Origin: Thalia democratica
Lineage: Eukaryota
Assembly (NCBI GenBank): GCA_965202585.1
Contig: OZ241826.1
Coordinates: 15,252,001-15,316,000 of the forward strand
Length of the DNA: 64,000 bases
Direction of reading: 5' to 3'
Below the pieces are notes generated by a model that was not told the origin of the DNA, did no database searches, and worked only from the letters and a program-made list of their open reading frames with translations. This document shows, one piece after another, positions 32,201 to 33,071 of this stretch; positions within the stretch are counted from its first letter, which is position 1, and every line of letters begins with the position of its first letter. A program made the position numbers and the translations under genes.

Positions 32201-33071
32201 ACATGAATTTGATAACCAATGATGTTCAACAAATGTCTGACACGAAGCAATAAATAATTTGCTCATGAGATTAACATGCTTGCTGAGGTTATCAAAATTA
32301 GCTAAATTATTCTATGTATGAAAATAGATATTCATTTATGATGTTTAATTTTACAAAAGATAATTGTTTTAATATATTTATTAATTCATATTGTTAAATT
32401 ATATGATGTTTTATGTTTTGCATTTATCAATGTTGACATTTTTAAATGTCATTCCGGATTCAATTTTTTTAGCTCTCGTTTTCTCAATTTCAAAAGAATT
32501 TAATTTATACTAAGAATTAATCAAGATATTTTATTTTTATCTAACTTTTAAGATTTTAAGTTAAATATTTTTTACCAACATAATTGTTTTACAAATTCTT
32601 TTGAAATTTTTATCACCCTAATTTCAACAAAAATTATATATGCATAAAAATGGTTTGATGTAAGTCTTAATTTTATAATGAAAGTAGCTGAGATTGAACT
32701 AGTATAATTAAATATTATTATATTCTTTATATAAAAACCCTCTTGGTCATAGATTTATCCCTGACATGTTAACTATTTTTATGCTACAACAATTTATTTT
32801 TGGACATAGTGTGATATTGCTTAACTATCAAAGTTAAAGTAAGTTGTATTTACAAACACTTACAACTTTCTGATGTAGATTTGAAGTATAACACCAACTG
32901 ACACCAATATTTTGTTCACAGGTCGAGGAAAACGGTAAGATCAACCGTCTCCGCAGAGAGTGCCCGCTTCCAGAATGCGGCGCCGGAGTGTTCATGGCTT
33001 CCCACTTCGACAGGCAGTACTGTGGAAAATGCGGACTCACCTACGTGTTCGAAGGAGAAAAATCCGCTTAA
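29228..33071 (+). CDS. RPS27A: Ubiquitin-40S ribosomal protein S27a (eS31) fusion, 156 aa
   Basis: Exons 29228-29275 ([16 protein letters not shown]), 29797-29851 ([18 protein letters not shown]), 31422-31639 (GIPPDQQRL...[20 protein letters not shown]...FYK) and 32922-33071 ([15 protein letters not shown]...[16 protein letters not shown]-stop). Phases 0,1,0; AATAAA about 25 nt after the stop. Confidence 0.98.
29638..29730 (+). ncRNA. SNORD58: Box C/D snoRNA, SNORD58 (U58)-like
   Basis: 8-bp terminal stem ttgtgtgc/gcacacaa, box C ATGATGA at 29647, box D CTGA at 29719. Guide cttaggacacct is complementary to the conserved LSU motif AGGUGUCCUAAG and resembles recalled human U58 (TGATGACTTTCTTAGGACACCT). 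Confidence 0.85.
30591..30721 (+). ncRNA. Box H/ACA snoRNA guiding 18S Psi105 equivalent (SNORA36/SNORA50/snR44-type target)
   Basis: Hairpin gcataa...ttatgc, H box AAATTA at 30647-52, hairpin aagctgcag...ttgcagctt, then ACA+3 nt (30716-21). The 3' pocket gaaccat / ctgattt pairs with 18S AAAUCAG-[U-U]-AUGGUUC, with 14 nt from pocket to ACA. Confidence 0.85.
32209..32295 (+). ncRNA. Double-guide box C/D snoRNA (SNORD78-like 5' guide, SNORD95-like 3' guide)
   Basis: 9-bp stem ttgataacc/ggttatcaa, box C ATGATGT at 32219, C' ATGAGA, box D CTGA at 32283. 5' guide caaatgtctgac (LSU UCAGACAUUUG); 3' guide ttaacatgc-ttg-CTGA (LSU GGCAUGUU). Confidence 0.85.

Follow-up and report, generated by a model that had tools for sequence, protein, structure and literature searches.

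A predicted SNORD78-type box C/D snoRNA in intron 3 of RPS27A, with a D' guide for 28S helix 96 and an apparently orphan D guide

Positions 32209-32295 (+) of the window, as we refer to the whole 64-kb stretch of DNA that was analyzed, hold a complete box C/D snoRNA of ~87 nt, as judged from reading of the sequence and from its fold, and taken together the sequence comparisons indicate that the element is genuine and conserved, an intronic snoRNA of the box C/D class with a predicted role as a methylation guide. The explanation we favor, at a probability of about 0.8, is that it is an ordinary SNORD78-type intronic guide RNA with a D' guide for helix 96 and an orphan D guide. Such an RNA would be released from intron 3 of the RPS27A pre-mRNA and assembled into a fibrillarin snoRNP, in which the D' guide (CAAAUGUCUGA) would pair with 28S helix 96 at UCAGACAUUUG and direct 2'-O-methylation of 28S G3290 (position in our own numbering of the 28S of this genome). 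By these comparisons the RNA corresponds in function to SNORD78 and has a degenerate D' box; its expression and the methylation itself are predictions.

The result adds an annotated methylation guide and a predicted helix-96 Gm to a poorly annotated, AT-rich animal genome, and it suggests that the SNORD78-type guide-target pair extends beyond the vertebrates in which the mark was mapped. It also carries a caution, in that a 7-nt likeness to a human guide is uninformative until the guide has been set against the rRNA of the species itself. The phenomena involved are well known, namely double guides, orphan guides, and snoRNAs hosted by introns of ribosomal protein genes.

Anatomy of the snoRNA and its host gene

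The snoRNA lies on the sense strand of RPS27A, at a distance of 569 nt from the 5' and 626 nt from the 3' splice site of its intron, in DNA of ~24% G+C; the window is free of N throughout. A preliminary description of the region, made from the sequence alone, had quoted both the letters and the coordinates of the snoRNA correctly. The features of the snoRNA and its surroundings are as follows.

31422-31639, + strand: exon 3 of RPS27A, with a translation ending ...KLATLRFYK
31640-32921, + strand: host intron, intron 3 of the ubiquitin-S27a gene (RPS27A), GT..AG, placed by the translations of the flanking exons
32209-32217, + strand: 5' arm of the terminal stem, UUGAUAACC, a perfect complement of 32287-32295
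32219-32225, + strand: C box AUGAUGU, aligned to the C box in the SNORD78, SNORD72, and SNORD91 models and the same in the paralog
32226-32241, + strand: D' guide, with a core at 32230-32240 that pairs with the species' own 28S at 3287-3297
32242-32245, + strand: degenerate D' box ACGA, where the SNORD78 consensus has CUGA; GA is kept, and the box is the same in the paralog
32246-32263, + strand: internal hairpin AGCAA-(8 nt)-UUGCU of 5 bp, from the centroid fold, with a stem identical in the paralog
32265-32271, + strand: degenerate C' box AUGAGAU, from the sequence, with AUGAG kept in the paralog
32272-32282, + strand: D guide UAACAUGCUUG, the SNORD95-like stretch of the preliminary description, without a target among the RNAs scanned
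32283-32286, + strand: canonical D box CUGA, from the sequence, identical in the paralog
32287-32295, + strand: 3' arm of the terminal stem, GGUUAUCAA, the complement of 32209-32217
32922-33071, + strand: exon 4 of RPS27A, with a translation ending ...EGEKSA, followed by the stop codon

Read from 5' to 3', the elements run UUGAUAACC-A-AUGAUGU-UCAACAAAUGUCUGAC-ACGA-AGCAA-UAAAUAAU-UUGCU-C-AUGAGAU-UAACAUGCUUG-CUGA-GGUUAUCAA, and positions 32208 and 32296 form a tenth pair that extends the terminal stem from 9 to 10 bp. A C box near the 5' end, a D box near the 3' end, and a terminal stem give the RNA the build of the box C/D class, for which we used RUGAUGA as the C box and CUGA as the D box and, as the hallmark of its members, a stable RNA bound by fibrillarin, NOP56, NOP58, and SNU13. 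The internal hairpin starts directly 3' of ACGA and would join D' and C'. The processing of mammalian intronic snoRNAs that lie far from the branch point depends on extended terminal stems, and the long terminal stem found here fits with the position of this snoRNA far from both splice sites.

Two further candidates were seen in the same gene. Intron 1 contains a second box C/D candidate at 29643-29724 (+) with an 8-bp terminal stem, Rfam scores below threshold for snR78 (33.6 bits) and SNORD58 (24.8 bits), and a putative D' guide that forms 8 bp with the species' own 28S (ACUCUAGU, near position 2660). Intron 2 contains a SNORA4-like H/ACA candidate at 30590-30720 (+; 25.6 bits vs. a gathering score of 56), so that each of the three RPS27A introns seen holds one candidate guide RNA.

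At gathering thresholds, an Rfam search of the whole window returned two tRNAs and no snoRNA family. (The two tRNA genes, at 42752-42824 and 54202-54274 on the minus strand, are one letter apart in sequence and have 11.4 kb between them; by reading of the anticodon loop, UAC, both would be tRNA-Val.) A sub-threshold scan of a local 301-nt stretch, in which matches up to E = 10 were considered, gave its best score to SNORD72 (RF00577, 28.1 bits vs. a gathering score of 43), followed by SNORD78 (RF00592, 25.4 bits vs. 38, E = 0.022 on the 301-nt search) and SNORD91 (RF00580, 20.5 bits vs. 51). All three matches are based on the C box and AAAUGUCUGA, and the best score of SNORD72 is attributable to its model also including the terminal stem. 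In the SNORD78 alignment the C box and guide correspond almost letter for letter with the model, whereas the 3' half of the model aligns poorly. The Rfam comparison proposed in the preliminary description was favorable to SNORD78 in part: C box and guide aligned, but the score did not reach the gathering threshold.

The D' guide and helix 96 of the 28S rRNA

To pair the guides with the species' own RNAs, the rDNA was reached via the 5.8S and one unit was taken, in which Rfam placed the 28S at L017 455-4085 (3076 bits), the 5.8S at L017 80-232, and the 18S at L018 6390-8197 (L017 and L018 being the two loci that cover the unit). A genome-wide search for the 28S with a pattern of the target 14-mer gave chance matches only (15 vs. 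32 with a reversed-pattern control), and two loci from that search were rejected as not being rDNA; the species' own 28S departs from the pattern in the last two letters (GGTT vs. GNTG).

The target region of the 28S reads ...CCGCAGAUUCAGACAUUUGGUUCAUGUG..., and the D' guide core at 32230-32240 forms 11 contiguous Watson-Crick pairs with it at 3287-3297. A single spacer C separates the core from ACGA, so that with ACGA as the D' box the fifth nucleotide upstream, C32237, faces G3290, the G of UCAG. This is a pairing of the kind by which box C/D guides are recognized (at least 10 bp ending beside D or D', with the target opposite the fifth nucleotide), and it has the same target and selects the same G as the SNORD78 guide. 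It was the sole zero-penalty match among all rRNAs and snRNAs tested, and when 1000 shuffled guides were set against these 6.5 kb of rRNAs and snRNAs, only 6 gave a run of 11 bp that included position 5. In human SNORD78 it is the D' guide that serves LSU-G4593 in H96, and the methylation at this site is present in mouse and zebrafish too and is not found in yeast (PMC8210301). Aligned in this way, G3290 is the predicted counterpart of human Gm4593/4623, the SNORD78 site in helix 96. Two elements of the preliminary description are upheld. Its likening of the 5' half to SNORD78 agrees with both the Rfam alignment and the pairing, and its reading of ACGA as a degenerate D' box agrees with the position of CUGA in the SNORD78 consensus and with the nucleotide on which the mark would fall.

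SNORD91, SNORD72, and SNORD78 serve neighboring marks within six nucleotides of the 28S (Gm4618, Um4620, and Gm4623, respectively, in the newer human numbering; PMC11550049), and SNORD72 and SNORD91 share AAAUGUCUGA with the RNA described here, their marks being 3 and 5 nt upstream. Their guides run further 3' (…CUGAAC…), however, and their D' boxes lie 3 to 5 nt further on. In the present RNA the guide stops pairing at U3287 with the box right there, which gives it the SNORD78 register. The likeness to SNORD78 (U78) comprises the guide element (D'), near-identical guide letters (CAAAUGUCUGAC), the target, the register, the G selected, and the intronic position. The differences are that SNORD78 has CUGA as its D' box rather than ACGA, that its Rfam model is 65 nt long as compared with ~87 nt here, where there are also a 9-10 bp terminal stem and an internal hairpin, and that, unlike SNORD78, the RNA lies >550 nt from either splice site. 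The human host of SNORD78 is the non-coding GAS5 and the host here is the protein-coding RPS27A, but as snoRNAs move between hosts this difference decides nothing on orthology. The 3' guide of the RNA described here has no target among the RNAs scanned, and that of human SNORD78 is not known to have one assigned to it either.

A paralogous copy and conservation in a second organism

A DNA search of the whole assembly identified one further copy of the snoRNA, 85% identical, at G000:C1:40203150-40203247 (-). Its host is another RPS27A gene (L020, G000:C1:40201650-40204747, minus strand), apparently intact and ~25 Mb away on the same contig, in which the copy occupies the same intron ~80 nt from the 5' splice site. 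The remainder of the two introns is unalignable and the offset of the snoRNA differs between them; a global alignment of both introns left the snoRNAs out of register and is evidence for the unalignable flanks only. Against this background the C box, ACGA, the internal stem, AUGAG, CUGA, and the 11-nt D' guide core (0 of 11 positions different) are kept, and in the terminal stem one G-C pair has become A-U through changes on both sides, i.e., a compensatory change. The hairpin loop differs at four letters. In the D guide, 3 of 13 nt have changed when 32270-32271 are included (2 of 11 within 32272-32282), and one of the changes replaces the C of AACAUGC by A.

The D guide of the paralog (L020 1501-1598, -), AAAUGCUUU, forms 9 bp with 18S AAAGCAUUU at C949. 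We do not claim C949 as a target, as 77 of 1000 shuffles equaled 9 bp and the match is not significant. That the helix-96 guide was kept after duplication of RPS27A while the two D guides diverged, such that each may serve or evolve toward a different substrate, is a conjecture that we regard as quite improbable. In the related organism the D guide of the window copy shows almost no change.

In public sequencing runs the stretch was found complete for the probable source organism, together with variant contigs matching the paralog; variant letters in the reads also occur in the hairpin loop, at 32251 and 32255-32257. In a run from a second organism, one contig of 103 nt spans 32200-32299 and differs at 2 of 100 nt (98% identical), another of 81 nt spans 32212-32292 with 7 differences, and the intron flanks are matched only by ~40-nt pieces with 4-8 differences. 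Contigs of this sort do not show the ends of an RNA. On these findings both copies of the snoRNA seem older than the divergence of the two organisms, with purifying selection acting on the RNA. Given the near-perfect conservation of the entire RNA in the relative, the D guide may be constrained as well.

The D guide, the SNORD95 site, and alternative readings

The sequence AACAUGC-NNN-CUGA is present at 32273-32286, as the preliminary description had noted, and its resemblance to SNORD95 consists of the 7-mer alone. The preliminary description had gone on to propose a chimeric double guide, with the D' guide serving the SNORD78 site and the D guide the SNORD95 site (Cm in GGCAUGUU), that either arose by fusion of two guides or was ancestral and was separated into two later, in vertebrates. 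The 7-mer does end 3 nt before the D box, which is the register given for SNORD95 in the preliminary description, and double-guide C/D snoRNAs are common in general. GCAUGUU (GCATGTT), the absence of which the preliminary description had itself named as fatal to its proposal, nevertheless has no occurrence in the species' own 28S, 18S, or 5.8S. The conserved flank ...ACAAUGUAGGUAAGGGAAGUCGGCAA locates the counterpart of the SNORD95 site in the 28S, where the sequence reads CUCUGGCCGAUAGAAC, the site itself being GGCCGAUAG (also given as CUCUGGCCGAUAGAACAAUGUAGG or GGCCGATAG) in the rDNA copies matched. A genome-wide pattern search of this site gave 263 rDNA matches, and among the 100 that were listed all read GGCCGATAG with one exception, GGCTGATAG (CUGAUAG). 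On the evidence of its rDNA, the SNORD95 claim is refuted for this species. The 28S has no complement of the D guide at GGCAUGUU with a C opposite the fifth nucleotide, and SNORD95 (U95), which in human is a double guide for 28S Am2815 and Cm2824, has another guide that is without counterpart here, where the other guide targets helix 96 (G3290) and not the nearby A. No Rfam match to SNORD95 was obtained up to E = 10, and the 7-mer is broken by the C-to-A change in the paralog. We take yeast 25S to read ...GAUAGAAC at the SNORD95 site; if so, the vertebrate CAUGUUGG would be derived, which would argue against an ancestral double guide. A chimera of SNORD78 and SNORD95 is in our view scarcely credible, and a likeness of AACAUGC-NNN-CUGA to SNORD95 beyond chance was not confirmed. 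The D guide may instead act on some other substrate, such as a small RNA, tRNA, mRNA, or pre-rRNA spacer, which would make the RNA a true double guide of another composition. The D and C' boxes are intact, the contig of the relative has its 2 differences in 100 nt across a snoRNA that includes the D guide, and the rDNA spacer contains two 9-bp matches, at L018 3590 (contiguous) and 3912 (interrupted by one mismatch). In 28S, 18S, 5.8S, 5S, U1, U2, U4, U5, and U6, however, no acceptable pairing above chance was found (the U1, U4, and U6 sequences being taken from this genome). The longest Watson-Crick run through position 5 was 6 bp, which was reached by 986 of 1000 shuffles, and the best rRNA/snRNA pairing was poorer than for most shuffled guides. 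One candidate, 18S CAAGAAUGUU, was rejected because its sole mismatch falls exactly at the nucleotide that would be methylated. Nor did the whole rDNA unit including spacers (18 kb) contain a match above chance: the two spacer matches are about what an AT-rich stretch of 18 kb would give by chance, that at 3590 would be lost with the guide substitution of the paralog, and that at 3912 is mismatched at this position in both copies. With the paralogs differing at 3 of 13 D-guide positions, as against none of 11 in the D' core, another substrate for the D guide appears unlikely, and beside its canonical D box the guide is best read as an orphan with no recognizable substrate.

The two remaining alternatives concern the D' box and the status of the gene itself. 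A second, canonical CUGA lies inside the D' guide at 32237-32240, and if D' were located there, UUCAACAAAUGU would serve as the guide and U3294, rather than G3290, would receive the mark. In favor of this reading, CUGA has the canonical D' sequence, unlike ACGA. However, the guide so defined has only 7 contiguous bp (ACAUUUG) and gave no match in the target scan, four letters complementary to the target would be left within a protein-bound box, and it is ACGA, not CUGA, that the internal hairpin directly follows. The same internal CUGA is present in the SNORD78 consensus, ahead of a D' box at the position of ACGA, and we consider use of the internal CUGA very unlikely. We attach equally little weight to the view that the locus is not a working gene but the decaying remnant of a snoRNA or a chance resemblance in an AT-rich intron. 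In its favor are the sub-threshold Rfam scores, a fold z-score of only -1.5, and the fact that among the listed runs that contain the stretch none is on record as RNA. Against it, the element forms an island of conservation, with a compensatory stem change, in paralogous introns that are otherwise unalignable, is 98% identical in the run of another organism, and has an 11-bp in-register match on a known methylation site.

The rDNA repeat unit used for these comparisons (L017/L018, G000:C79:20000-38200) is ~15 kb in length and carries 5S, U2, and U5 genes in the spacer downstream of the 28S, all on the same strand as 18S-5.8S-28S.
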